From Kudoa neothunni (taxonomy: Eukaryota; Animalia; Cnidaria): DNA of 32,961 nt. The notes below the pieces were generated by a model. It saw only the letters and a program-made list of their open reading frames with translations. It ran no database searches and had not been told where the DNA came from. Below, piece by piece: positions 9,219 to 32,961 of the stretch (the first letter of the stretch is position 1; the number at the start of each line of letters is the position of its first letter). The stretch is taken from NCBI GenBank assembly GCA_964304625.1, contig OZ199840.1:2932028-2964988 (forward strand), written 5' to 3'. The translations under genes were made by a program, and so were the position numbers.

Positions 9219-12200
9219 GGTAGTGGCTATTACCACGGATCCGTGTAATCCCCACGGGAATCAATTTCTCTGCAATTATTATCTCTATTAAATAACTAAT
9301 TTCACATTACTATTATTTATAGTTTTCTCTACTAAATTATAGAATTAGGTAACAATTGAGAATATCTTTTTTTACATATTTATATTGTTTATTTTATTGA
9401 TCGCTTTCCATAATTAAATGAAAGATTTATTAATCTTAATTTAATACATGCTCAAAATTGTATTATATCATTTTCTGTCAATAATAAGATTAAAGTTAAA
9501 GAATTTTGTGTGATTTTGTAGGTCTGACATTACTCTTGAAGCGCGCGCTTCCACATGATATATTCAACCTCGTGTTATTTAATTTTTTTCCAATATTTAA
9601 ATTATATGATTTAGTGTATTCTATTCATAAATTATGAACTTTAAGATAAAATATGCTCATTATATATCACAGAAATGATGTGAATTTTCCTCTTTAGATT
9701 TCAATATAGACAAGAATTTTGAAAAAATTAATCATAATTAGGTCATTTTTCTGAAATTAGATAAATATAACATGATGAACAATGGCTATCCTAGTCAAAT
9801 AAATAATGAGAGATCTAAGCATATTTAGTTTTCTTTTTGTATCCAATAGTGGTTAAAGCGTATCCCTTTGGTCTCCCAACAGACTTCAATTGAGAGGGAA
9901 TTTTTAAGGCTAAAATAATTAAAAAAAAGAAAGGAAATGAAATGAAAGTACCATCAAGCTCGATCATATTTAAAGTAGGTGCTAATTGATTTTCAGACAA
10001 AAACCGTTTGGATCTCGGGAGCATTTTCATTTGAAATATTATTAACAATAATATTCTCGATAATCTCCTCACCTTGCAGAATAATATTATTACCAACACC
10101 CTCAACATTTATTTGAGAATTAAAATTATTCTCTATAACATCTATTTTTTGTAAGTTAGATACGAGTAAAATATTCAAGTTAAGCGTCATATACCTCTTC
10201 CTTCAGAGATATCTTCATCTTCGGCTATAGCCTCAGAGTATTCAATGGTGCGATTTCCTAAAAATAAATCAAGAAAAGTTAAGTTTTCTTAAAATACCTA
10301 ATTTATTTATTTTATTAGTTTGATGTCGTGGTTCTTGATTATTTTTTCTATTGTGTTGAATAGTGATAGGCAACTATCATAAAACTCCCTACAATATTCA
10401 GCGGACAAAGCTGCTAGCTTATTTGTGTAAATCACAGAATTTTTTAAACGTTTTCCATAAGAATTAAAAATTTCTTTTGGTTTTATTGTAATACTCTCTT
10501 TTGGTGTTATATTTATAGTTTCCATTTCCAAGAATCGGCTCATGTGATCTTTTGACCACCTAGGGTGGCATAAATTTGAATCAAACATTGGAAGCAGGTT
10601 AAACGCTCTCTTTTTAAAAATATGACTACATGGAAGGAGATGCGATCTGTAAATATAACAATTGCATTTTATGGATGTAGTTAAACTATCCGTATTCGTG
10701 TTTTAGTCAAAATTTTGAATTTGTTTGTGGATTATATTGAAGGCAAATGGATTTAAATGATTAAAATACGCGTTTAGAACTTCATTTGAGGTATCAAAAT
10801 TAACTGGGTTCAGTAATATTTTGGTTATATTGTATTTCCTTTCTATTCTCATTGATTTGAGAGCGTCAAAGAAATAACGGAAAAAATCGTTAGGATTTGA
10901 AAATTTCTTTATTGTTTGTTTTAATTGACCATTAATGGCTTCTAATCTATTATTGGTCAAGTTTTCATAGAAACGATATGCTACACTTAATCCTATGACC
11001 CCTTCATCAGCGATTGTTTCCTTATTGGATTTAAAATAGTTAGTTAACTTATCGCTGCTTTGTTGAAAAAGATTATTGCATAGTTTATCGAATTCATGTT
11101 TATTTTTCGAATAGATAATTTTATTAAGAGTTTCAAGCAATTAGTTCCTTTTCTCTCGAGTGATACTCTATTTCGACATAGTTATTTCACGTCAAAAACT
11201 TTGAGAAACATGAAATATGCAGATCATTAGATTGGAGTTAGGAAATAATTCTTTCAAACATTTCCTTAGAGTGTGGTGCTTGTCAGTAATGATCGTTCGG
11301 ACATTTTGAGTCATGTTCGGCATCATTTTTATTAGTTGAGAAATATACCATTTAATTGACTCCGCCGTTTCATCGAACAAGATGCAGCCGCTAGTTATGT
11401 GGGTTTCACCAACCGAGTCTTCTGCAACAGACAGATACAATGGCGCACTAATGAACTAATAAAACAACGAAATAGAGAAAACCTCCTAAGATTACCGTGA
11501 GTCTAGCAGTTTATAGGTTGCATCAAGCATGAGTAACTCTGGAAAGAAATTAATTGTGTTGAGCATCTGTTTATCCATAAAAAAGATTCCACAAACATTT
11601 TTATTATCATCTGATAAAACGCTCACCATGCAATTGTATTGATTCTTTAAAATTTCTAAAATTAAAGCAACGTTATCAGTTCCAACTTCAGAGGATTTTT
11701 TAATGTTGTGGATAGCTTTCAAAGGTATATTCTTGCCTGTCTCGTCATTTATCTTGGCTTGTATGAGCTTTTTGTTTGCTCTGACAAATAGCCATCACAT
11801 TGGTTTAATTTCCTCTGACTGTGCTGGGTAAGTTTTCTTAGATCCATGGATCATTTGGATGATTATGGACAGTGTTAGAAGATCTAATCTCCAGGAAATT
11901 TCCGTCTACACTTACTCTTAATGTAACTTTAAATGGGCAATCTCTCTTAAGGGAATTTTTCTTGCGTTCGCCTTTACCTCTATTTCGGTAATGGGCTCCA
12001 AAGTAGCATACGTAAGTTATTTCGTAATACACTAGCGTGTTTTTAATATTTCGATTAACCTAGTTTTGCACTGAGTCAATTCTTCTTGAATCTCGAATCT
12101 TTAAATTCACAAAATGACTATTCTCATACTCTTGAATATAAGATTTTAAACTTTCAAAAGTTTAAAATTTCATTCCAATATGAAAATTGTCTGAATTCGA

Positions 12201-12508
12201 ATCACTCATTGTAGTTCAACCAAACTCGTGAAACACGTGGAGTTATGTTTACACTGCATGGCTCAAAGCAATAATTTAGAAATGATTAATATTTATAATT
12301 AATTCAACGTTAATATTGTTTTAGTCTATTAAATTCGCTAACATTTATGTTTCTGACCGTCTATTTTACATAAATTTACAACCATCTCAAATTTCTTTAT
12401 TTTTCATAATTTAGTAGAGAAAAATATAAATAATAGTAATGTGAAATTAGTTATTTAATAGAGATAACAATTGCAGAGAAATTGATTCCCGTGGTAATAG
12501 CCACTGCC
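9219..12508 (-). mobile_element. Mutator-like (MULE) DNA transposon, about 3.3 kb, with long TIRs
   Basis: TIRs of about 110-130 bp (GGTAGTGGCTATTACCACGG...GAATCAATTTCTCTGCAATT...CTACTAAATTAT at about 9219-9340, reverse complement at about 12406-12508). Flanks TTAAGTTTG (9210-9218) and TTAAGTTTA (12509-12517) form a 9-bp TSD with one mismatch. Confidence 0.92.
9815..12209 (-). pseudogene. Disrupted MULE transposase (FAR1/ZSWIM3-like N-terminus, DDE core, SWIM finger)
   Basis: ATG at 12209. Motifs YYEITYVC...CPF...HNH, FPELLMLDATYKL, IITDK...CIFHV, TNNRLEAING, SWIM CNC...LPCSH (about 10620-10667) and C-terminal GRPKG. Multiple in-frame stops and frameshifts. GT-AG introns at 11448-11495, 10258-10297, 10142-10194 and 9910-9951. 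Confidence 0.88.
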
Positions 12509-17423: not shown

Positions 17424-20225
17424 CCACTTCCACAATCACTATTGTATGATTTTTAAATTCTAAATCTGATTAGTTCAATCAGTTTTAACTTTGCATTAAA
17501 ATATAATATGGTCAATACATAAACATATTTTAAAATTACTCCAGTTGCATTTTTAATGATCAATAAAGCGAATATATCTTTTTATTGCAGGTTTTCATTT
17601 TTTCGGTATAAGTTTTTAATATAAATTATTTTTAACTTTCAAAGTTATTAGAATATTTTGTTATTTCCAATTTTTTATTGACTTTAAACTGTTTTGAAAA
17701 CAAAACAACCTCATGATTTTGTTTCTTTTTTTAATAAAATTTATAGTGATTGTTCTGCTATGATAAACCAACATATTTTCGATTCTTTCTTATTTAACTA
17801 CTTTATTAATTATTTATTGAACATCAGCCTTATTTTATATACGTGAAAACTATTTTGCAAATAAACAACAGGTATATTAATGAATAACTTTATTTAGGGG
17901 GTTTAGCATTAGGATTAGTTATATAATTAGTATCATCGTGTTTTAGACTATATACTGATTTATGTGTAAAGTTACAGCATTTAAATAGTGATATAATAAT
18001 TGAAGAGCTCATTAAATAATCTCTCCTAAGGTATTGTCTTTATATATATTTCGCTACATTGTTATTAATAAACTAATAAACAAGGATTTTTAGTTGTTAA
18101 TCTGCTTATTTTATTTACAAAAAGTTATGTGGATATTATCTGTATTACGCTAGTAAACTATGAGATTAAAATAATTTTATTTATCAATTTATTTGACATT
18201 TTTGTTTCGATATAACATGAGTTTTCATTATGTTTCTATTTTATAAAATAATCATGTATTATTAGCATCACATATTAATCGTTTCGGATGTGTGTGATTG
18301 AATGGTTCAGGTTTACTTATTTTGGAAAAAGCTTTTCTCATATTAAAGATGATTAAAAAATACGGTCAGGGTTGAAGAAAAATTTTATTCCTTTGAATAA
18401 TCTTATTTAAAAGTTTATCTTTACGTTATTGTATAAAACTGATTTTTTATAGATGAAAAATATATTGCATCTTCAGTATATCAAGAATAAACATCATAAA
18501 TAAAATCCTAAAATATAAAAATAATCATTTTGACTTTAAAATATTGTTAAAAATTAACCCAAGGATAAATATATTAACTAAACACAGTGAGTTCTCGATA
18601 TTTCATAACTTTTCTTTGGTCCTAAAAAGTCATGCAGTTAGAAACACTTACGCATTTATTAGGCTCACATGCGCGAAATATAGCTAGTTTATTGTTGAAT
18701 TATTCTACTCTAAGGTATTTTTTAATCGAATATTTTTTAAAGCTCATTAAAAGAATATAAGGGAAGCAATTCTGCAGTGAATTTGCTTTAGAAGCACACT
18801 CATAATTAAATTAATGCCATTATTTGATTCTCAAGTTGAACACGTTTCCTCAAACGCCTAAAAATTGTTATCTTCATCATTTTCTCAGACCTCCTAAAAT
18901 TTATAAGGAATGTTATTTATCAATTTTTCATTTTCAATCTTGGTTTCCACTATTATATTTAAGTTCTCAATTTAGTTATCTTATGAAATGATTTAAAAGA
19001 ATAATGCATCCAAATTATGTTCATTCGTAAAAATGAAGGCAAGTTCAAAAAATTAATCCCCTATTTGAGTATTTACGTCGAAAAGTCATAACTCTGGATT
19101 AAATTTTATAAGGTTTAAATGTCATTATTTTTACGCCACATTTATTGATTTTAAGGGATTGAATTTATGCTAAAATATTTGATTCTATATATCGTTGAAT
19201 AAATATTTCTTTAACACACAGTAATATTCTATGCCAAGAACTTCACATAATTCTATGATAAATGAGTTATACTAAACTTAGGGGAGTTTTTGAACCGTCT
19301 CTGGATGTGAAGATCATCTATATATATGAGGTAAAAATCATTTTATTTTGTTTGGAAAAATTCAGATATAAATCCTTCAATTTTTTCCGTTGGATGAGGT
19401 TTTTTGATTCGATTGTGAATGGTATTTCATACATAAATAATTTATTTCCTTTAAAATTTTGGATTTTATAATTTAATCTATGGTAAATAGAGTAACTTTC
19501 CCTCTCAAGGAACCAATCCCTAGTGTGGTTTCACCTTTTTCATAATGCATACATCATTTTAAAATTTGATTCCTAATGATTTTTAAACAAATTTTGTGCA
19601 TCACTTTTATTTAAATAGAGCCTTAAATCCAATGTTAGTACAATTTAGTTTTTATATTTGTAAATTATAACTGAAAAACTAAATGCCAATTCATAAACAT
19701 CATAATTATGGTATTCCTCACACATATACATTATTTACTGCTCTTACACTAAAAATGACTTTCACATTCGAACAAAAAATTTTGCGTCAGTTGGGATCAA
19801 TAATACCATTATCGATACTCTGGAGTTTAAAATTTTAATAATTAAGAAGTTGAAAAATATTTTCATTTTATCCCTAATCGCAGTCATGTTGTATGGTGGT
19901 AGTTTTATAATCGCTTTAACTTACATTAGTTAAATTCTTCTTTAGTTCGAGAACTATTTAAACTTAATAATTAATTATTAAATCATGGATCTAATTTTTA
20001 TTGTTAAGTTATTGGAATTACAATATGCACCATTCATTTTAACTGTTAAGACTATTCGATGTTATAGTCTGTTGCCTTCTTGCATCTAGTTCCACAGTAC
20101 AAAATATCACGAAATAATACACCAACAGTAATAGGTTATCTAATTAAGGTTCGTTTTTGCGCCAGATTCAACCGCCTCTTAATTCCTCATGAGAGATTAG
20201 CGGCACCCCCCCATTGATTATCACA

Positions 20226-20312
20226 CAGTCGTGTCTCGGTATTGCGTAGAAAATTTGGACCGCTAACCTATTACACAATACAAAATTTTCACGCAATATC
20301 GAGGCACGACTA
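20226..20312. mobile_element. 87-bp pogo/Tigger-like (Tc1/mariner superfamily) MITE, almost entirely TIR
   Basis: CAGTCGTGTCTCGGTATTGCGTAGAAAATTT ... AAATTTTCACGCAATATCGAGGCACGACTA form about 30-bp arms. TA follows the right end and CA precedes the left (mutated TA TSD). Confidence 0.75.
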
Positions 20313-20635
20313 TATATCTTTTTAACATTAACTCTATGTTATTGATTCATCAAACCGTAACATTCAAATTTTCCAACCAACAGCTCGTTAGGATTTAGTT
20401 ATACAGAGCTTTAGGAAACTAAGATTCAAGGATTATGAGATTGAAATCCAGAAATTGGTTGCGCAATAGCGAAACCAATCAAAATTCCTCATTTTTTAAT
20501 AATTCAAATTTAATTTAAATATATGACGTGGATTTCGTTGGATAATTAATAACAAATGGCGCATTTAAATAAATATACTTATATTGAATAATACACAGAA
20601 GATAAACGTTAAATTAATCAATATCGAAGTCTTAA

Positions 20636-21893
20636 CCCTCGAAGGATGGTGACCCAAACAATTACGTGTGTTCCCAAGGGGGTCGGTTTGCGACCCTAGT
20701 GGTTTTCTACTATAATGATTGACTATGATTCTACCATTTGGTAGAGAGACTAATTAATCTTTTGACTATTAAAATATATGCTTAAAATAACCAGGCGAAA
20801 AAGAATTTGTTAACAATATCGTAACCATTTCAGGAGACATTACCAATTAGACCTATTCAAACGAAACTTAAATGGTAACTTTAACAGATTTAACTATTTT
20901 GGTTTAGTTTTTAATTAAATTGACTAAAATGGAAGCTTTTACGCCACTTTTAACACCAATATTAGGCTGATATGATAGACCATGGCAGTAACGGATGTTT
21001 ATCTCCAGTGACTTTCGGTAATTTAATATTCATTTATAAATTAAAATATGTTTACAACACATCTTGAGAAATAAAGAATAACGTTAATTCTAAATAAGTA
21101 AGGATGAATTTATTTGAATTATGAGAGAAAATATTTTTTATCAGAATATGAATATGATTCAAAGCTTATGTCTTTTAGCATGGTTTTAATCGTTCCACTA
21201 GTTCTAAGGGAACATTCCAGCTTAATTTCACTAAATATTAAAAAAAAATTTTTTAACATAAATGGAACTGTTTAATTTTATGGAAATGGGTGAATTGTTG
21301 AAATTTGGCCATATCATGACACAAAAATAATGCGACTAAGTTTTAATCGATTAATTATTAAACTAAACAATTAAATTCAAGAAAAATAATGTCACCCTTC
21401 AATTTACTATAATTTAAATTTAATTTACTGAAAAAATAAACATTATGAAATATTTAAAAAGCACATCAAGCGCCTATTTCGGATTTCAACGCGCAATAAC
21501 CAGGGCGACAATATTAGAGGGGTCAATCTCTTTAACCCTATTCCATTTTCGGAACCTTATATTAAATAACAAGAATGGTTAAAAATTACAATATTCCTCA
21601 ATTTAGTCGTGACAATATATATTGAGATTATCATTATTCTTATCACGTAAATTAATACACTTTACACAACCATATAAAATATTTTTAAATTACGTGTATC
21701 AATGCTACGTAACATCAACCGCAATTATTGAACCGTTAAATCCTATAATTAATCTGGAATTTTGTATTTATAAACAATACACAATAATCTAAGAATACAC
21801 GAACTCAAAAATTAAAATAAAATGTTTAAGTAGGGAAAAATAAACATTAACCAAAAGTGGGGTCACGAATGACCTCGTATGATCCCAGGAGTG
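20636..21893. mobile_element. Possible degenerate piggyBac-like non-autonomous element
   Basis: TTAA on both sides (20632-20635, 21894-21897). Ends CCCTCGAAGGAT versus reverse complement CACTCCTGGGAT (8/12). Subterminal GGGGTC...GACC motifs near both ends. Confidence 0.35.
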
Positions 21894-21920
21894 TTAATGT
21901 AAATATGAATATACAGTATA

Positions 21921-22732
21921 CAGTCGGTGGCTGGTTCTACTAATTTTTTAAAAAGAAGCGCAATTTGAATAATCAAATTCACTATCAATATAGAATATTT
22001 TTTACATGTTTTTATTAAAGAATTTAGATCTAAATAATATAGTACGGTTGAGAATTTTCCGACTTCTTGATCACGTGACTACCCAGTTTTACCCATTAAA
22101 AAAATAGATGAATTTTAATGTTCGAAAGAATTAAGTGAAATGAAAAAAATCAAAACATGAATTAATAAAATATGTCCACAATATCTCCCCGAAAGCTGTC
22201 AAATTTGTTACTATAAAGCATCAGATATATCCTTCATATCCAACCCCTTTGGCACCTTAAAAACCCAAATAAAATTGTTTAAATTACTGAATACAAATCG
22301 ATTAATGTTTTCAGTTGCGAATTTATTAAAATGAGTTTAAAAAATTATCCAATTTTGACAAAAAAGGAACAATCGATCGATCATGATCGCATTGGTGAAA
22401 GCTGTATTCCAAAATATTTTGACGAATTTTTTGTGATCAAAATAACTAATTATTTGTCCCTTAAATGTATGCAATTCAATTATATTAAATAATTAAGAAT
22501 ATTATTATATGCGCGTGCTAATAAGTGCTTAAAACCAGACGTTGCCAATTCCACACACATTTTTCCGCGATGCCGAAGGGATTACTCAAACCCGGGTAAC
22601 GAGTGTGCCTTCATTAAAAATTTATTAAACTTCATTACAAAAACTTGCGCATTTCAATTATGTTATTTAATAAATAATCGAATAATTTCCTGTAATTCGC
22701 GCGCAAAAGATGCGTAAACCAATCACTGGCTG
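21921..22732. mobile_element. Possible Tc1/mariner-type MITE relic
   Basis: TA|CAGTCGGTGGCTGGTT ... AACCAATCACTGGCTG|TA; 12/16 TIR identity and a TA TSD. Confidence 0.45.
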
Positions 22733-23195
22733 TATACAGATATTTATCCACTTAAACTCCAAAATTTTTTTGATATACAAAAATTTAAGAGAAAGTGGAA
22801 ATAATATACAAGCTAAATTTAATGTTTAACATACATTTTTTTGTTAATTATTGTAGTCTTATGAGATTACGCGTGCTTCCGAGTTGGTTCGAATTTAGAA
22901 TGGGAAAATATTTTAAAAATAACTATGTTTAAATCTCAACCTTCCTATCACTCTGATCTGATTTTTGAAGATAATCGTAGGGAAGTTTGCATAAAAAATC
23001 ACATCCAAAATGGTGATTTTTAGGTTCCTACACTACTCTCCAATCACAATTTTAGATAAAAATTCAGAATCCATGTGAAAATTGGATTTTATTATAGCAC
23101 AGAACGTATTATTTATCAAATCACCTAGTTCAGTCAATATTTATTCATTACGAGTTAAATCCTTGCACGCTTTCAAATATCGCGTGATAGACGAG

Positions 23196-23203
23196 TATAT
23201 AAA
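23196..23203 (+). promoter_or_regulatory. Candidate TATA box for the snoRNA cluster
   Basis: TATATAAA in locally GC-rich sequence, about 30 nt upstream of the first snoRNA terminal stem (23230). Confidence 0.45.
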
Positions 23204-23229
23204 CCGGCGTCGGCCGACTTTTGTCGTTA

Positions 23230-23297
23230 AAATCCATGATGTAACATCTTTCGGGACTAAGTGTTGTTTGTGCTGATAAATTTCACTGATTGGATTT
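23230..23297 (+). ncRNA. SNORD2: Box C/D snoRNA, SNORD2/snR39B-like (LSU rRNA Gm, yeast G805 equivalent)
   Basis: Terminal stem AAATCC/GGATTT; box C ATGATGT 23236-23242; guide CATCTTTCGGG 23245-23255, complementary to conserved LSU CCCGAAAGAUG; D' CTAA 23257-23260; C' GTGCTGA 23270-23276; box D CTGA 23286-23289. The +5 rule targets the G of CCCG. Confidence 0.85.
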
Positions 23298-23303
23298 ATA
23301 TTT

Positions 23304-23370
23304 TTGTTTTTATGATGATTTACACCGCCCCAGTCTTATGTAAAATGATGAACGGTTGATCTGAAAACAA
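23304..23370 (+). ncRNA. SNORD31: Box C/D snoRNA, SNORD31/snR67-like (LSU P-loop Gm, yeast G2619 / E. coli G2251 equivalent)
   Basis: Stem TTGTTT/AAACAA; box C ATGATGA 23312-23318; guide ACCGCCCCAGT 23324-23334, complementary to ACUGGGGCGGU; D' CTTA; C' ATGATGA 23345-23351; box D CTGA 23361-23364. Confidence 0.87.
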
Positions 23371-23423
23371 TGAAACCATTAGTTAAAAATTAATAAAAAC
23401 CCATTGTTTGTGAGCTTCTGGTT

Positions 23424-23516
23424 GCGTTGGCAATGATGATAGCTCAGATATGATTTCACACAGGGGGTTGTTTATAGCCCTCCATAACGTGATTCAGATT
23501 ATGAGAGCTGAGCCGC
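23424..23516 (+). ncRNA. SNORD97: Box C/D snoRNA, SNORD97-like guide for Cm34 of elongator tRNA-Met(CAU)
   Basis: Stem GGC/GCC; box C ATGATGA 23433-23439; internal hairpin at about 23462-23483; 14-nt guide TTCAGATTATGAGA 23493-23506, the reverse complement of TCTCATAATCTGAA (anticodon arm of eukaryotic elongator tRNA-Met); box D CTGA 23508-23511. The +5 nucleotide pairs with C34. Confidence 0.83.
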
Positions 23517-23774
23517 TTTTATTCTGCCTTAACTTGGACATTTCTTGCTCATATGAATGTTAGAGTTGTGTGTTTTTTAAGGCGGCTAGGCCCCAAAATC
23601 TTACTGGTTCGATGCGGGATGACATATGACATGTGAGGGAACGAATGAGCCTGTGACTTCGACTGTATTTCGAGTATTTGGCTCATTCTCATTTTTTGTG
23701 AAAGCCCCATTGAGAATAGTTTTCAATTTTGTTAATCACCTAAATATTAACAACAGCATGGTACAAATAAACTG

Positions 23775-25027
23775 TTAATATTCATTGCTTTCGCAATAGT
23801 TAGAGCTCGATATTATGAGATCTCCATAGGCTTGTTGGATCCAATCATTAATTTCAAAATCGTCTTGTCAACCAATCAAAGTGTGGTTCTTTAGTTATAT
23901 TGAATTTTATTTACCTAAAGGACAAGTTGATAAAATATTGGATCGTATTGGATAATTGTTGATTGCGTAAATAAGAGTGAGGATCGCCTTTTTTTGTTCT
24001 AAAGCAGTGTTTCCCAACCTCTTTTCTGTCGCGCTCCACCTTTTGCAAAAGTATTGTTTTTTAATTTAAACTGTTTATAACATTGAATGAAGCTCCCTAT
24101 CACACCAAAATTTGAATGCAATTAATATATACTTCTTTTCTCATTAAAATTAAAATGTATTAGACAAGCTCTAACTAAATTTATCCATGGACCTTAAAAA
24201 TTTAATCTTTAATTCTTCATACTGCCAAAGACAGCGTCAGGTGAATCTCATGATAATCTAACCTCCATTAGGAAAGACTTTGGTGTATACGGGGCTAATG
24301 GACCGAAAATAAATAATATAAATACAAAATTAATCAATATTATATTAGATTTAATAAAAAAAGGGGATATGCTATTCTAAATGAGACACGATTGTGAATC
24401 GAACCATTCTGATTCCATCTGGATGAAGATGTCAAATATTGCTAATAATTTTTATATAATTAGTCGTTGCTATTTTCAATGTTATTTTAAAAAGCTCAAT
24501 TAACTGGGAAATTTGAGAATAATTATAAATATTATGTTAATACATATCTTTTATAAAATATATGGAACTTTTTAATTTATTTATTATCAAAATATACTTA
24601 TCTAATAAAAAAATATAAGTAAGAAACCATACTAATTAGTATGAAGCCAAAAATTCTGATATTATATGAAAAAATTACGCCCGCTTTTTAATTTATTTCA
24701 AGTAGTTTCCGTTGTAACCAATTAAAGTAAGTTACCTGCCTCGGTATAAGCACATGAGATATTCCTTGTGGTACTTAAATATTTTAGTTTCTTGCGATCA
24801 CCGATAAGAGGTAATATAAGCTGATTTTATATTTTTTCAATTAAAATAAAATTTGAACTGTTTCGTAAAGCTATTTTGGATACATGAATTTTTCGAAATA
24901 TTATGAATCCTCGCAAAATTTTCATTGAGGAAACCAATGCTCCTAATCAATCGTTAACAATAATAGTAACTCAGTTAACGTGAATGATATCATATAAACC
25001 TGGTATTGAAATATTGAGAAACTTCAT
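23775..25027 (-). CDS. Hypothetical 114-aa protein, 5 exons
   Basis: Phase-consistent GT-AG exons 25000-25027, 24884-24942, 24736-24820, 23915-23998 and 23775-23863 give MKFLNISIPGALVSSMKILRGFIIFRKIHLILPLIGDRKKL...QQAYGDLIISSSNYCESNEY*. No homology recognised. Confidence 0.55.
24005..24480. mobile_element. Diverged, truncated second copy of the hAT MITE, in opposite orientation to 3120-3801
   Basis: Starts CAGTGTTTCCCAAC and is colinear with the reverse complement of about 3310-3801 (shared ATTAATATATACT, TTTTCTCATT-AAATTAAAATGTATT, GTGTATACGG, TATATAATTAGTC). Second TIR and TSD not found. Confidence 0.8.
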
Positions 25028-25137
25028 TTTACAACGTTAATGAAGAGGTATTAAATAACAATCAAAACATAATAAAAGATTATTCCAGACATAGAATATA
25101 AACGATTGATATATTATTGGAGTAAGTTATCAGGTTA

Positions 25138-26370
25138 TTACTCCTTATAATGTTTGAGAACTTTTTCAACCTCATCTTTTGATCCCATGTATATAGGAGA
25201 TGTTTGATGGATATATGCTGGTTGGATGTCAAGAATATCTTGGGCGGGTGTCACGGCCAATCCGCCAGCACTCACAACAATGTAGGCCATGGGAATACAT
25301 TCATAGAGCAATCTCAACTGAAAACCAAATCACATGAATGAATGAATGAATTCCACCCAATGAATACCTTTCCTTTGGGGAACTGCTTTGTGGAAGGGTA
25401 GATGTAAATTCCTCCATACATTAGAGTACGGTGGATGTCGCTAACCATTGAGCCAACATACCTTCCTTTGTACTGTTCTTTGGGATTCTAGAAGATATGA
25501 TTAGGCATTAGATTCAATTAAAGCTGTTTAGATAATTTTAAATACATTTGGATTTTTGATATCATTCAAATAGCTGATAAGATGGGGGTCGAAAGAACTG
25601 GCAGCACCTTCGTTAATACTATAGATGTGGCCCATACTTGGTACTCGAACATTCTTATGTGTTAGGATAAATTCGCCCACTCCCTAAAGCAATAAACTTC
25701 CATACACCACATAAAGATGCGATTTACTGGCTCTAAGGTGAATAAATTCACATGATTGTTAATAGCGAGTACCATAACAGTGGCACTACCGTATAACACA
25801 TATCCAGCGGCTATAAGATCATTTCCACGTTGAAACATGTCACTGTCTTTTGTAGCACCATCGGGTTTTTTCCAGATGGCAAAAATGGATCCAATAGGAG
25901 CCAAGCAGTCAATGTTACTGGATCCATCAAGCGGATCAAATGCTACAATATATCGAGAAGACTCAGAGCATGGCAAGTCGATTGAATGTTCGATTTCTTC
26001 AGAAATTAGAGTACAAGCAGTTCGTGAGGATGTAATATAATTGATGAAAAGTTCGTTGGAAATGACGTCTAGTTTTTTTTGAGTGTCCCCAGTTGTGTTG
26101 GTAGCACCACTCAAACCAAATCTATTCGCAATGAAACCCGTTAAATAATGATTTAAATCAATTCTATAGATTTCGCGCCCACTAAAATTTATACATTTTG
26201 ACAATTCCAGCTCTTCTCACAGCCATAGCTATAGTTTTGCATGCAGTAGCAATGGAAAATAACAAGTGTGTTAAATCACCCCTGGCGCTTGGATATTTCT
26301 TTTGCACGAGCAATATCCATCTGCCGAGGGTCATGCAATCAAGATCAATACCATCAACATTCACCGACAT
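25138..26370 (-). CDS. FBP1: Fructose-1,6-bisphosphatase class I, 5 exons, 335 aa
   Basis: Exons 26195-26370, 25728-26121, 25546-25683, 25368-25487 and 25138-25317. Motifs [48 protein letters not shown] and GKLRLLYEC. Confidence 0.97.
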
Positions 26371-26559
26371 TGGGAACAACTAACAGCAGTCACTTGATTA
26401 GGATTTAGATTGGAGCCTAGGATTATTTTTAAAAAATATGTAAAGTATTTAACTTTCTCGGCTCGCAGAGATATCATTTTGGTATTAAAACGCTCATTTA
26501 TTTTGATATATTTTATAGGAATAAAAAAGTTGTCAAATTTTGCGGAAAGGATTTTTGTT

Positions 26560-27240
26560 TACGCCACCTATCACCAACGGTCTAATCCCAAGTTACGCAA
26601 TAATTCCTATGGAGACGAAATCTCTTTTCATATTTGGCGCTCCAGTCATCCAAACATGAGAGTTTGAGTGTAGTAGAACAGTCAGTGAAAATCGGGGAAG
26701 GTCGCTTATCAACTGGTTGGTTAAATAGTTGATACAAATCTGCATTTAATATCGTCTAATGTGAATTTTAGTCAGTAGCTAGATGTAAAAAAGATTATTG
26801 TTCTTCATTTACGGAAAATTTTAGTAGTAGACCTAGATTCCCAAAATATCTCCATATTCTGAGTTACACCTAAGCACATCACTAGAATAATATTCGCTGT
26901 ATTTTCATAGTGTGGGCCTATTCACGATTATTAGTGAGGGAGAAAACTTAGATGAATACAGAAATTGAGTGAAGAAAACGCAGAAGTATGACCTAAACTC
27001 CATTCTCACATATGAGCTACATTAACTCAGTCTTCTTCCGAAATATTCAATCTGCATTTTATAGTTTTCCTGTGTGCGAAACTTTGGATTTGAAATTTCG
27101 CTATTATGCTGACTCGGCTTTTTGAGAGAGATAAGTTTTGACGCAGTTCCTTTTACGATAAAAAGCTTCTGGTTAAGATCTCATTAATGTATTTCAAATC
27201 TTAGAAGGTGCCATCACATTCAAACATGATTGCATACAAA
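26560..27240 (-). pseudogene. Possible degraded Tc1-like transposase relic
   Basis: Broken frames reading FLYSSKFS...KYSEYY...YGDILGI faintly resemble the Tc1 FSDESKF...GG..VWG region. No TIRs identified. Confidence 0.2.
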
Positions 27241-29181
27241 GCTAATATGACAAAAACTAGAAAAAATGAATTATTAATCAAAATGTGCTGAAATTGAACC
27301 AGAAATAATAATTATTGTGAGTATTTTAACCATTATTTACATATCTACGTATGTGTTAACTGGATGATTTTGATTTTAAATAATGAGGGAATTTTAACGT
27401 CGACTATAGGATAATCAACTATTCGACATTACATAAAGTAGCCGCAATGTAAAAATTCACCAATGCATCCTCTCACATTTTAACAACGCTAGAAATCGTC
27501 GATATTTGAATTAATTTTGAAAAACTCTCAAAAAACGCCATGATAACGAGTATTTTTTTTTAATTTTTATCATTATGTTCTAGAGATAATCGTAAATTTA
27601 TAAGTATCATAATATTTTTTATGATTTAGGAAAATACCTCTAAGTCTTAATTTTCTCGTTTTGATATGGTTATTTGTAAGATTTTACCGTATGACACCTA
27701 AGATGGAGGATATCTCCCTCCGTTAGACTACGTTTATTGAACTTATCATTATAATATAGTAGGATAGGATGGCATTGGTTGAAACTAGTTTTAAGCTGAT
27801 GCTCCGGATAAATAATAAAATTTTTTAAATTTATCGATATTCCTCCCACTGAACTATTGTAAACTCATTAACATTTCCAAATAAAAGTACAAGCATCAAT
27901 GAAAAAATTATATCAAATACCTTACGATGCACCGTATTTTATTTCCTAAAAAACTTCTAGATCAACCTTAAATGTATCACCTACTACTCATGTGTTGCAA
28001 ATATTTCTGCCCCGAATAAGATTATGAGCAGCAGATATAAAAATCTTATAAAGGAAGATGATCCAGAATTGGAAAAACAAAACTATTCGTTTCCTGGGTG
28101 AGAATACATGATTCATTTAAATTATTTTCACTATTTAATTCCATCATCTATAGTTGTACATATTTTCATAGATATCTTTATTTATTTATTATGATAATTT
28201 TGCGGATATCTTTCCTTGTTGACCATAAGGAAAAAATTTTTAGTTGATTATTGGCTAAATTCCTTAGATTTATAACTTTACAAGAGAAAAATTGTGATTT
28301 AAACGTACGACCCCAAGCTATATGATTATAAGTATCATATAATTTAACACATATATTCTCAGCTAAAAAAGCCCATAGAGGGTTTTTTGTTGTATAATTT
28401 AGTATATATTTATTTTTTGCATATAATAATTTTTATAATAAATTTCTTCTTTGTCGTTTTGTTTTAATTAATATAAATGATATTTTCAAGGCGGCCTCAC
28501 AGATATGATTATGTATGTGTGTAACTAATTATGTCGTCATCGACGAGAATTCGTTACACCTAATTTTAAAATCCTTCCTCAACTTTTTCTTATATAATCA
28601 AGATGCAATAAAAAACAAACACATTTGACGAATTCAATTTCTCATGAGAAGTTGCAACTCTTGCATTACAATATGGGAGAGGCTAGTTACATTGTTAATT
28701 TTTAATCCTAAATAGCGCGGTACGCACGCGCGTTAACAACTTTAAATCCTACTAACTTTTATTTACAAAGTATATAAAAACCTAATTTTTAAGAATTTTC
28801 TATATTTATTTGTTTTCGTTCTACCGCTTCGATCTTTGGAATAAAAAATAATTAATATTGTCAAAATTAATGGAACCTGATTATTATTCACCATGCAAAT
28901 AATCGTTTCTTACAATATCATACATCGAAAAGAACACTAACGAAAATAATTAATGTTTATTATTAATTTTTTTATCATATTTATTAAATATTTTTCAATT
29001 GAAATATAGTTTTTATCATTATCAATTATTTTGTACAGCGAATACGTAATTTTGATTCGGATAAATAATAATTGTGTAAATATAATTAAATCCGACATAC
29101 CGAATAAACTAAAGTAGGTAGCTAATTTTCCGAACTTTCGAGATTCTTACGATAAAAATTTTAGAAACGGTCTTATTTTAA

Positions 29182-30336: not shown

Positions 30337-32961
30337 CTAAAATTAACCACATTAATACGACGAAATTGTCGATGACAGTAAACAAATAATGTAAATCAAT
30401 CTGATACGTCGCTCCCTTGGGCACGTCATAACTCGATCAAATCGAAAATTTTATGAAGAAACAAATGCGGCAAATAATAGAAGGTGAGCGGTTTGATGAT
30501 TTGCTAAACTCCTAAAACCTTCACCTTTTTATCGGGACTTCGTCGATCAATTCCGGTATCAAGTGTTATCGCTTGTTTTTAATTTACCTTATTAGAACAG
30601 CTTAGTTGATGCGTCAAATCAAGAAATATCAATATTAAGATTAAATATTGATTATTGGATACTAGCGGTTTCTTTATTATATAATGACCCACGACAGGTA
30701 AAATAGGTTGCGTGAAGTTTCTCTCATGTTTGTGATTGTTGAGATTATTTTAAAACTAAACGAATAATCATATGGTCACGTGGGTTTGATATTTTTCTTA
30801 CATCTCGTCTATTAATAGAGTATTAAGCCCAAATAATACTGTCGGAAGATCCGATGCAGTCGTTGCTGACAAATATTTTTCACCTGGATACAATAGAAGG
30901 ATAACGCCTAATGTGATAAATTAATAAAATATTGATCAACGTATGTTTATTCATTGGTCCATATTTAAATGGACTAAATTGTGTGAATCTGAGACGTAAG
31001 CTGTGTACTCTTATTTTTATTTCTAACAAATTATCGAACCCTACCAAAAAATCATTTTCAATGTACCGTTGCATAAAAGTAAAAATAGGGAATATTTGTA
31101 ATATTATGGACATTAATTTTATAATTATCATAAGAGTTCAAAAATTCAAGATTCTCTTCTTGTATTTAATATTCGGTTAATACATAGGGCTCACCACCTT
31201 ATTTTACAAGAAATCTAAAATCTATCATTATCTATCCGAAAAAAATTCGTTAAGTTTTGTTAATCGCGTACTTTGAGCAGATTTGGTCGTTAATGCTGAA
31301 ATGAGCGGCCTCATTTAATGCCCTTAATTTTATTAAAAATTGAAATATAAGCAGTTTTATTATAATATCAAAATACGACAAAATAGATAAAGTTTGCTCT
31401 TTTAAACTTTTTTAGACATTTTAAAATATGATATAGGGTCACGCTTGTCTTATGACTAAGGTTGGCTTTACTTGAATCTAATTTTTTTAACATTAAATTA
31501 AATTTTGAATTACATTGAAACAGAACTAGTGCGTAATAGACCCCATTCGTAATCGGTTATTATGATTGCATTAAACTAAATTTTTTTCGTCACTTACTGA
31601 TTAAAATAACACAAAATATTCGTGTTTATTATTTATGTGGAAGAAAACAAAAATAAACTCCGTCCTAGAAGTGTGCTTAAACCCCGATTTGTTCGTATTT
31701 CGAACAAATTTTTCCCATGAAAAATAATGAAAATTAATTTACTACGCTACCGCGCACCAAATAAATGACTATTTTTATTCCCATCCATTAAAGAAAATCA
31801 TGCCTTATGTTTATAAAACGTAACAAGTAAATATTAAATATAATAACTAAAATAAAATATAGGATAAGTATTATTTGGGTATCATACAATGGATTATAAA
31901 GAGTTCTCTTTCGCTGACGTTCACATAATTTGATTGAACTACTCTTCTTCTAAAATTTTTTGTCTTCTCTGTTTTATGCTCTAACTGGATTTTTTCTGAG
32001 TATCCTTTCTATATTTGTTTGAACTCAAAATTTTTGGTCGAACTCCAAGGTTGTTCTGTAATCGGAATCTCTCTCTAAAACATACCGAGTATGATGCATT
32101 CGCAATCGAAGTTAAAATAAGTCTGATAAACAAATATTTATTAGATGAATTATAATGAAAATTGGTTTATGTATTCAGTATACTATTTTTTATTTATTAG
32201 CGTATGAAATTTAAAGTGATAATTAAACTCTTTGTCATTTGTAAATAAATTGTTGATAAAATATTTTCGTAGTCAAAAGTATGTAAAGTGTATTATATTT
32301 AATTTTAAATGAAAGGAGAAATAAATTATTCGATGCTTTAAAAAAGATTTATTTCTTAAACATGTTATTTTTTTAAATAAACTATAGGACAAATAAGTAT
32401 TATAATTTAATTAGCGTCAAGATTGGGTTTTTTTGTTTGTTGAATTATTTTGGACTAGCGCTCATGCTCAGCTTTGCCTGATACTATGTGATGGAAAATT
32501 CTAACTTTTAGCTTTCTTTCAGTGTAGTGAAATTCTACGGTAAAGTTAATTTAATTTAATTGGAGGGTTAAAACCCACACATTTTAAGTCTTCGTTTTTA
32601 TTTATGCATTTTAAAGTTTGACATTATTTTTGCACCGTGGTTATTTAGAGACACCAAAATATGCATGTACTTTTCAGTATAATATAAATATAGATGTTGA
32701 TAGAAAATCATTGAATATTTTTAAGTATATTATACAAATTATTGATTATAAATACAAAGATTACAATTTTATGAGAAATCTAATTAGCGATTAATACTTA
32801 TTTGTTAAAAAACACATTAAGTAATTTAAAACAGGGCTTTCGGCTCTTATCAAAATTTTGCGATATAAATTAATTCTTATAATTATCAAATCTATCATTA
32901 GTCTACAAACGATAAGAAAAAAAATACGTGATATATGCCGAAAATAGATAATTAATTACTC

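Follow-up and report, generated by a model that had tools for sequence, protein, structure and literature searches.

A cluster of three box C/D snoRNAs with predicted rRNA and tRNA-Met targets in Kudoa neothunni

Organization of the snoRNA cluster

The analyzed stretch of Kudoa neothunni DNA (32,961 nt, hereafter the window) contains three box C/D snoRNAs, here named sno1, sno2, and sno3, whose presence on the plus strand at positions 23230-23516 is confirmed. The cluster and its spacers are composed as follows:

23230-23297, plus strand: sno1, box C/D snoRNA resembling SNORD2/snR39b, with a D' guide predicted to address the LSU rRNA G in CCCG/AAAG
23298..23303, plus strand: spacer 1, ATATTT, 6 nt between the stems of sno1 and sno2
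23304-23370, plus strand: sno2, box C/D snoRNA resembling SNORD31/U31/snR67, with a D' guide predicted to address the LSU rRNA G in ACUGG/GGCGGU
23371..23427, plus strand: spacer 2, AT-rich, 57 nt from stem to stem (27% GC over 23372-23419)
23428-23516, plus strand: sno3, box C/D snoRNA resembling SNORD97, with a D guide predicted to address C34 of elongator tRNA-Met(CAU)
23517..23520, plus strand: TTTT, directly 3' of the sno3 stem

A C box, a D box, and a terminal stem (6, 6, and 4 bp, respectively) are present in each of the three snoRNAs. In sno1, the C box ATGATGT (23236-42), which has a deviant last base (T), is followed by the guide (23245-55), the D' box CTAA (23257-60), and the D box CTGA (23286-89); a C'-like TGATAA is present, and the ends form the 6-bp stem AAATCC/GGATTT. 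The sno2 sequence comprises the C box ATGATGA (23312-18), the guide (23324-34), the D' box CTTA (23335-38), the C' box ATGATGA (23345-51), and the D box CTGA (23361-64), enclosed by the 6-bp stem TTGTTT/AAACAA. The third member, sno3, combines the C box ATGATGA (23433-39), an inner hairpin GGGGG..CCCTCC (23463-83), the guide (23493-506), and the D box CTGA (23508-11) with a terminal stem of approximately 4 bp. The coordinates that an earlier note had proposed for all three snoRNAs agree with ours to within 4 nt, and its description of a same-strand trio within approximately 290 nt, with the first two members 6 nt apart, is borne out by the boxes and stems. The gap between sno2 and sno3, which is 57 nt in our annotation, becomes approximately 50 nt if the sno3 start is taken from that note.

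A scan of both strands of the 33-kb window for a C box and a D box combined with a terminal stem of 4 bp or more returned six C/D candidates, half of which are the members of the cluster, located on one strand within 290 nt. The same scan of 60 dinucleotide shuffles of the window, again on both strands, gave a mean of 1.6 candidates.

Guide sequences and predicted targets

Target sequences were taken from the single assembled rDNA unit and from the tRNA genes of the same genome. The D' guide of sno1, CATCTTTCGGG, forms 11 Watson-Crick pairs with the LSU rRNA segment CCCGAAAGATG of the organism itself, and the fifth nucleotide upstream of the D' box faces the G of CCCG, which is the equivalent of yeast Gm805, a residue guided by snR39b (PMC5199042). 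The D' guide of sno2, ACCGCCCCAGT, forms 11 base pairs with the LSU rRNA segment ACTGGGGCGGT and picks the second G, the equivalent of yeast Gm2619, which is guided by snR67/U31 (PMC5199042). In the case of sno3, the D guide TTCAGATTATGAGA and the anticodon arm TCTCATAATCTGGG of elongator tRNA-Met are joined by 14 contiguous pairs (12 Watson-Crick and two G·U), an arrangement that puts C34 of the tRNA at position five. Elongator tRNA-Met, whose gene is located at L051:1494-1570, is the best match of the sno3 guide among 38 tRNA loci, and comparison of this guide with the organism's own rDNA revealed nothing comparable to the tRNA-Met pairing. In all three snoRNAs, at least 10 nt next to the D or D' box are antisense to the target, and the fifth nucleotide falls on a known modified residue. 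From these guide duplexes, methylation of the two LSU guanosines and of C34 in tRNA-Met is predicted. The combination of rRNA and tRNA guides noticed earlier in this cluster is thus supported by two duplexes with the organism's own LSU rRNA and one with its own tRNA-Met.

At the gathering level, no Rfam family is matched anywhere in the window. In a permissive Rfam search, sno2 aligned end-to-end with SNORD31 (RF00089) at 29.1 bits (cut-off 40, E-value 3e-4); its guide, ACCGCCCCAGUCU, is identical to the SNORD31 consensus in the Rfam alignment, and sno2 was also aligned with the Giardia and Dictyostelium counterparts of this family. The same type of search gave 18.8 bits for sno1 against SNORD2 (RF01299, cut-off 37), with a nearly identical guide stretch. 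Since both scores lie below the gathering cut-offs while the guides are identical or nearly identical to the consensus, we refer to sno1 and sno2 as SNORD2-like and SNORD31-like in their mode of working and do not count them as formal members of the Rfam families. No matching Rfam family was found for sno3. Judging by its D-box element antisense to the anticodon arm of tRNA-Met(CAU), with C34 at position five, sno3 qualifies as a SNORD97-type guide. The sequence UGAUUCAGAUUAUGAGA-N-CUGA of sno3 recurs in SNORD97-like RNAs of other eukaryotic metagenome contigs, which show little likeness to sno3 beyond the guide.

It is very improbable that any of the three arose as a chance look-alike or is a decayed copy devoid of a functional guide RNA, given that three candidates lie within 290 nt against a background of approximately 1.6 per 66 kb of strand, and that all three guides match, in the correct register, conserved sites of known modification in RNAs of the organism itself. 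The features that could be read in favor of such an origin are the failure to reach the Rfam gathering thresholds, the T at the end of the sno1 C box, the short terminal stem of sno3 (approximately 4 bp), and unremarkable folding z-scores.

Co-transcription of sno1 and sno2

The 6-nt gap between sno1 and sno2 offers no room for a promoter, nor for an exon with two splice sites, so both snoRNAs must be derived from one primary transcript. The exclusion of a one-snoRNA-per-intron organization for this pair, as stated in the earlier note, is therefore a matter of geometry, and so is the need for endonucleolytic separation, which follows from the same spacing: because exonucleases alone are unable to free both sno1 and sno2, a cut in or next to spacer 1 is required, and from the sequence layout this cut must fall in the spacer or in the adjoining stem ends. 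The two spacers, 6 and 57 nt long and located on one strand, are too short for promoters of their own, which is the arrangement expected of a polycistronic unit. A yeast-type Rnt1 (RNase III) stem-loop was found in neither spacer: spacer 1 has only 6 nt, and the fold of spacer 2 (-14.1 kcal/mol, z -1.8) is not significant and no better than those of shuffled sequences. Spacer 2 includes the sequence CATTGTTTG, which could form base pairs with the 3' half of the sno2 stem.

Public RNA data comprise three raw-read runs labeled with the species, in which no reads were found on 4.2 kb including the FBPase exons; since even these neighboring exons are without reads, the runs provide no test of the cluster. 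In addition, no contig from the RNA runs contains the stretch. A functional box C/D RNA would accumulate at 60-100 nt in a complex with fibrillarin, Nop56, Nop58, and Snu13, and its target would be methylated.

Genomic context and intron structure

Open reading frames of at least 70 aa are missing from 17.4-25.0 kb of the window on either strand, and ten short ORFs contain no Pfam family at its threshold. Coding signal was detected neither within approximately 5.8 kb upstream nor within 1.5 kb downstream of the cluster, and exact-product look-ups of two local ORFs retrieved nothing on record. The ORF and Pfam checks are in line with the previous claim that no plus-strand host CDS is evident, as they reveal no coding host. 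The nearest recognizable downstream gene is that of FBPase, which is encoded on the minus strand from approximately 25.1 kb. This gene has four introns of 52-77 nt that begin with GTATAA, GTAAAT, GTATTT, and GTATTC and all end in YAG. Typical introns of this genome are shorter than a snoRNA.

The brevity of introns had led to the suggestion in the earlier note that the guides may have been relocated into a stand-alone transcript. The idea that short introns forced such a relocation is weakened by two other loci. The second intron of RPL32 is 226 nt long and accommodates an H/ACA-like double hairpin with AUAGCA and ACA boxes, a fold that is not recognized by Rfam. The other locus is a U18-like singleton at G000:C2:6455788-6455850, represented by one sub-threshold Rfam match to SNORD18 that is supported by its guide; it is the only other C/D snoRNA found, and the canonical donor AAG/GTAAGTAT (slash at the exon-intron border) is located 135 nt upstream of it. 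Thus, as far as these two loci can tell, enlarged introns seem able to house snoRNAs in this genome, and relocation is not a necessity. The snoRNA census yielded no Rfam match to SNORD14 or SNORD24, and antisense 12-mers for the U24, U43, and U33 sites retrieved nothing snoRNA-like.

Candidate promoter elements upstream of the cluster

The region upstream of sno1 contains the following candidate elements, three of which were identified by a motif search of the window:

22512..22517, plus strand: CGCGTG, distal copy 1 of 3, candidate regulatory site
22870..22875, plus strand: CGCGTG, copy 2 of 3
23181..23186, plus strand: CGCGTG, proximal copy 3 of 3, with its start 15 nt upstream of the TATA box and 55 nt upstream of the C box of sno1
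23196-23203, plus strand: TATATAAA, candidate TATA box with the full TATAWAWR consensus, also readable together with G23195 as the 5' splice site GTATAT

The candidate TATA box, previously reported approximately 30 nt upstream of sno1 and now located at 23196-23203, ends 26 nt upstream of the sno1 stem. The plus strand of the window has 33 matches to TATAWAWR, which corresponds to a chance of approximately 1.3% of finding one in a 13-nt slot, and only one match besides TATATAAA occurs in 2.5 kb. The CGCGTG copies at 22512, 22870, and 23181 are the sole plus-strand occurrences of this hexamer in the 33-kb window, and all of them lie at most 725 nt upstream of the cluster; the background amounts to 0.16 per kb on both strands over 298 kb of the genome, although these statistics are post hoc and the link to promoters was tested in a few places. 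For instance, at the U18-like snoRNA (L175:1446), the reverse form CACGCG precedes the C box by 57 nt, as compared with 55 nt at sno1, and the hexamer also occurs at the start of RPL32 intron 2, approximately 25 nt before the H/ACA-like fold.

The U3 and U2 genes have in common an snRNA-type upstream element, GTGACGTCA, at -70 to -62, which is absent upstream of the snoRNA cluster. An snRNA-type promoter was therefore rejected for the cluster, and its promoter would be of the mRNA type. Promoters of the mRNA type are unusual for independent animal snoRNA genes. A search elsewhere in the genome for the pattern of a TATA box followed by a C box gave 603 matches against 345 in the control, and none of the 50 inspected places is a snoRNA. 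The palindrome GTCGGCCGAC, which lies between the TATA box and sno1, was considered as a recurrent element and discarded, as it occurs at 8 places in the genome and 6 in the control. Nematode SL1 patterns are absent.

A TATA box approximately 30 nt upstream of sno1 would also suit a polymerase III gene. Under such a scheme the locus would not be one unit: sno1 alone would be transcribed by polymerase III and terminated at the T5 run at 23301, with sno2 and sno3 being separate or silent. The T5-G-T5 sequence, which begins 4 nt past the sno1 stem, and the TTTT that follows sno3 fit this scheme; however, the second T5 forms the 5' half of the terminal stem of sno2, 6 nt are too small for a promoter of sno2, the GTGACGTCA element of the U3/U2 type is missing, and boxes, stems, and guides are intact in all three snoRNAs. 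Transcription of sno1 as a separate polymerase III gene is therefore highly improbable.

Candidate splice sites around the cluster

The sequence downstream of sno3 contains two sets of features that bear on the question of whether the cluster is intronic:

23555..23581, plus strand: acceptor-like sites GAATGTTAG (last nucleotide 23563) and TTTTTTAAG (last nucleotide 23581), which would be used only if the cluster lies in a host intron
23643..23697, plus strand: hairpin GAATGAGCC/GGCTCATTC followed by T6, with a region fold of -37.7 kcal/mol (z -1.7)

In addition, G+C content rises right after 23581, and an AATAAA hexamer is located at 23766. With these sites, all three snoRNAs could reside in one long intron of approximately 370-390 nt (from 23195 to 23563/23581) of a small non-coding host gene, with a short first exon up to 23194 and a second exon from approximately 23564/23582 to a poly(A) site after the AATAAA. 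After release of the intron by splicing, an endonuclease would still have to part the three snoRNAs, a situation known from intronic clusters in rice and Drosophila. The donor GTATATAAA fits the local 5' splice sites of the four FBPase introns (GTATAA, GTAAAT, GTATTT, and GTATTC), and the acceptors TGTTAG/ and TTTTTTAAG/ lie 47 and 65 nt 3' of sno3. Such distances are near the one favored by vertebrate intronic C/D snoRNAs. The change in G+C past 23581 and the AATAAA at 23766 would mark the second exon. Moreover, the genome enlarges introns around snoRNA-like folds, as illustrated by RPL32 intron 2 (226 nt), the U18-like snoRNA has its AAG/GTAAGTAT site 135 nt upstream with no ORF around, and the upstream CGCGTG boxes could equally serve the promoter of a host gene. 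Animal snoRNAs in general are mostly intronic (PMC3089462).

The same sites can be read less favorably. In DNA with 71% A+T, donors of the GTAW type and YAG acceptors abound and are therefore of little weight; as an acceptor, AAG is poor, and all four FBPase introns end in YAG; the first exon would measure approximately 25 nt if it started at CTTTC 23170; and the consensus TATA box ending 26 nt before sno1 would have to be a coincidence (approximately 1.3%). No contig from the RNA runs contains a transcript of this kind, which is a weak argument. Taken together, an intronic location of the cluster is a serious alternative, although we hold it to be somewhat improbable. The hairpin at 23643..23697 may act as a terminator, or it may belong to a 3' trailer or to a downstream exon.

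Proposed transcription and maturation of the cluster

The stand-alone transcript put forward in the earlier note gains from the well-placed TATA box and loses from the GTATAT donor that overlaps it and from the acceptor-like AG dinucleotides after sno3. A stand-alone unit is plausible on the available sequence, and the more specific proposal that the locus is one transcription unit with its own RNA polymerase II promoter yielding three C/D snoRNAs is the reading we favor over the others, although it appears to us evenly balanced between true and false.

For a stand-alone unit, we infer the following course of expression. The promoter would be formed by the CGCGTG box at 23181 and the subsequent TATATAAA at 23196, and polymerase II would start at the sno1 stem or a few nucleotides before it, at approximately 23226-23230. 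In the nascent single precursor, a kink-turn would form from each pair of C and D boxes and recruit the core proteins, which shield the individual units. Endonucleolytic cleavage within the AU-rich spacers of 6 and 57 nt would follow, and exonucleases would digest the exposed ends as far as the stems covered by protein. The mature RNAs would direct 2'-O-methylation to the LSU rRNA residues equivalent to Gm805 and Gm2619 and to the wobble nucleotide C34 of elongator tRNA-Met.

A farther-reaching version of this scheme is offered tentatively, as we think it somewhat more apt to fail than to hold in all its parts. It states that C/D guides are made here in the plant and yeast way, within a small, A+T-rich genome of animal type (40 Mb) with introns of 50-80 nt: a TATA-driven polymerase II transcript would begin at sno1, which would thereby retain a cap, a new endonuclease would act in the 6-nt spacer and release the three guides, and the methylation of rRNA and of the tRNA-Met wobble position would be coupled under a promoter with CGCGTG (E-box-like) sites, which are also present beside other snoRNA loci.

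Comparison with known snoRNA clusters

Polycistronic units are the standard form of snoRNA genes in plants and are also known in yeast, Plasmodium, and trypanosomes. The Kudoa locus is a known kind of arrangement, and its particulars are the 6-nt spacing, the mixture of rRNA and tRNA guides, and a possible promoter composed of TATA and CGCGTG elements. Like the polycistrons of plants (Arabidopsis and rice) and yeast, it has head-to-tail C/D snoRNAs on one strand with short A/U-rich spacers; in those systems, one upstream promoter is followed by endonuclease cleavage and exonuclease trimming, and the same is proposed for the present locus. For example, snR67, which corresponds to sno2 in yeast, belongs to a polycistron, and in Arabidopsis the RNAs corresponding to sno1 and sno2 are encoded in clusters (PMC2656528, table 4). 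In contrast to the plant and yeast units, the host here is a genome of animal type, the 6-nt spacer 1 is too short for a yeast Rnt1 stem-loop, and the candidate promoter and the precursor are those we propose from the sequence.

Intronic clusters, such as those of rice, the H/ACA clusters of Drosophila, and PFS15/16 of Plasmodium, contain more than one snoRNA between one donor and one acceptor and require internal cuts, an arrangement that the Kudoa cluster would share if it lies in a possibly non-coding host, whereas the Kudoa cluster is flanked by splice sites of candidate status only and has a consensus TATA box at the position of the donor. The clustered snoRNAs of Drosophila are of the H/ACA class, and its C/D snoRNAs occur one per intron (PMC3089462). 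An animal precedent for clustered intergenic C/D snoRNAs without a nearby coding host is provided by Bm-42 to Bm-45 of the silkworm, a species in which one third of the snoRNA loci are intergenic and two intergenic clusters are known (PMC3089462). However, the silkworm members are approximately 250 bp apart and thought to have their own promoters, whereas the 6-nt spacing in the Kudoa cluster forces co-transcription.

The human SNORD97/SCARNA97 RNA resembles sno3 in that its D-box guide addresses the anticodon arm of tRNA-Met(CAU) and has C34 facing position five (PMC6601510), a function that was shown in human cells (Vitali and Kiss 2019, PMC6601510), and single SNORD97 orthologs are reported from insects, Ciona, and flowering plants (PMC6601510). 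The human genes SNORD97 and SCARNA97 stand alone in introns of EIF4G2 and LARP4, whereas sno3 is the third member of a cluster beside two rRNA guides. For sno1 and sno2, the predicted sites are the same as those of SNORD2 and SNORD31, with degenerate D' boxes (CTAA and CTTA), and the human genes lie in separate introns. The statement of the earlier note that the vertebrate counterparts are intronic in separate host genes is in agreement with the literature, in which SNORD97 is assigned to an EIF4G2 intron (PMC6601510) and U31 and snR39b are listed as intronic (PMC2656528, table 4).

A search for an orthologous cluster by the SNORD97 guide pattern retrieved 120 metagenome stretches, six of which have an upstream C box and none of which has SNORD31 or SNORD2 guides nearby. 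Two of these six (L067 and L158) have a pyrimidine-rich inner part like that of vertebrate SCARNA97, are possibly of human origin, and were left out of further comparison.

If the cluster is a stand-alone unit, it would provide animals with a clear case of a C/D snoRNA gene that is truly polycistronic, and it would lend itself to the search for the animal nuclease by which closely spaced snoRNPs are parted; if it is intronic, it would represent a non-coding host gene of the ordinary sort, uncommon in having three snoRNAs within one intron. On either reading, the three RNAs and their targets would have conserved, known functions, as far as their sequences indicate. The guide predicted for Cm34 of tRNA-Met suggests that the SNORD97 type survives in a very fast-evolving lineage, where its co-expression with rRNA guides would be possible.

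A second copy of the cluster in the assembly

The window closes with a gap of 200 N, and the next 9.8 kb repeat positions 17972-27771 of the window at 99.93% identity, so that an identical copy of the cluster appears 15.2 kb downstream. Given the gap and the near-perfect repeat, we rejected this copy as a real locus; it is most likely an unmerged overlap in the assembly.

snoRNA-type loci and a shared upstream hexamer

Outside the box C/D cluster (sno1 to sno3), two further snoRNA-like loci were seen in the genome. One is a U18/SNORD18-like C/D snoRNA, a singleton in ORF-free surroundings, whose guide GGTCCGTGTT forms a 10-bp pairing with the LSU; AAG|GTAAGTAT is found 135 nt upstream of it. 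The other lies in RPL32 intron 2, which is 226 nt long, whereas introns in this genome usually span 50-80 nt. It contains a double hairpin at L227:2757-2891 with an AUAGCA hinge and an ACA 3 nt from its end, and is therefore H/ACA snoRNA-like; Rfam gave no match for this fold at E values up to 1. All three loci, including the cluster, have CGCGTG/CACGCG, a non-canonical E-box-like hexamer, shortly upstream, against a background of 0.16 per kb. The hexamer is a candidate for a motif that regulates genes of ribosome biogenesis.

L175:1501-1563 (G000:C2:6455788-6455850), + strand: U18/SNORD18-like C/D snoRNA, 31.7 bits
L227:2727-2952 (G000:C3): RPL32 intron 2
Window 22512, 22870 and 23181; L175:1446; L227:2733: CGCGTG/CACGCG hexamer

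snRNA-type promoters and rDNA

The U3 and U2 genes (one each) share the element GTGACGTCA, placed 62-70 nt before the first nucleotide of the RNA. It is likely a proximal element of snRNA-type promoters in this genome.

L173:1431-1439: GTGACGTCA upstream of U3
L174:1431-1439: GTGACGTCA upstream of U2

The rDNA is represented by a single unit in the assembly (L004/L003, G000:C2:5419560-5428248, minus strand). Alignment to the Rfam SSU model is confined to positions 1158-1823, and the 5' half of the 18S, strongly divergent and A+T-rich, is still recognisable by eye.

Sequences flanking the cluster, and SNORD97-like RNAs in other contigs

Two inverted structures border the cluster.

Window 23209-23218: perfect 10-bp palindrome GTCGGCCGAC, between the candidate TATA box and sno1
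Window 23643-23697: 9-bp hairpin GAATGAGCC/GGCTCATTC followed by T6, ~130 nt past sno3

The hairpin lies within a local G+C-rich stretch (23581-23712), and an H/ACA identity was rejected because it is without an ACA box. The palindrome was rejected as a recurrent motif because it occurs at only eight places genome-wide, compared with six for the control; two of the eight are the two assembly copies of the same cluster site.

SNORD97-like RNAs with the same tRNA-Met guide as sno3 were identified in three A+T-rich, eukaryotic metagenome contigs. In L065, only ~10 nt separate the C box of the SNORD97-like RNA from the D box of another C/D-like unit that precedes it.

L065:1635-1728: SNORD97-like C/D RNA
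L118:270-363: SNORD97-like C/D RNA
L157, minus strand: SNORD97-like C/D RNA

Assembly duplication and inverted repeats

A 200-N gap closes the window at 32961, and beyond it window 17972-27771 is repeated at 99.93% (L006:1-10000, G000:C3:2964989-2974988). Thus, 15 kb, including the snoRNA cluster and the FBPase gene, is present twice in the assembly, probably as an unmerged overlap or haplotig. Also in the window, a near-perfect hairpin at 20222-20316 (stem ~40 bp, -41 kcal/mol, z -7.1) has a weak mir-592-like Rfam match (34 bits versus a cut-off of 67); it may be the precursor of a miRNA, or else a small inverted-repeat element. Inverted repeats of 93 nt at 9252-9344 and 12403-12494, 96.8% alike and enclosing ~3.2 kb with ORFs at 10307-11140 (minus strand), resemble DNA-transposon terminal inverted repeats.
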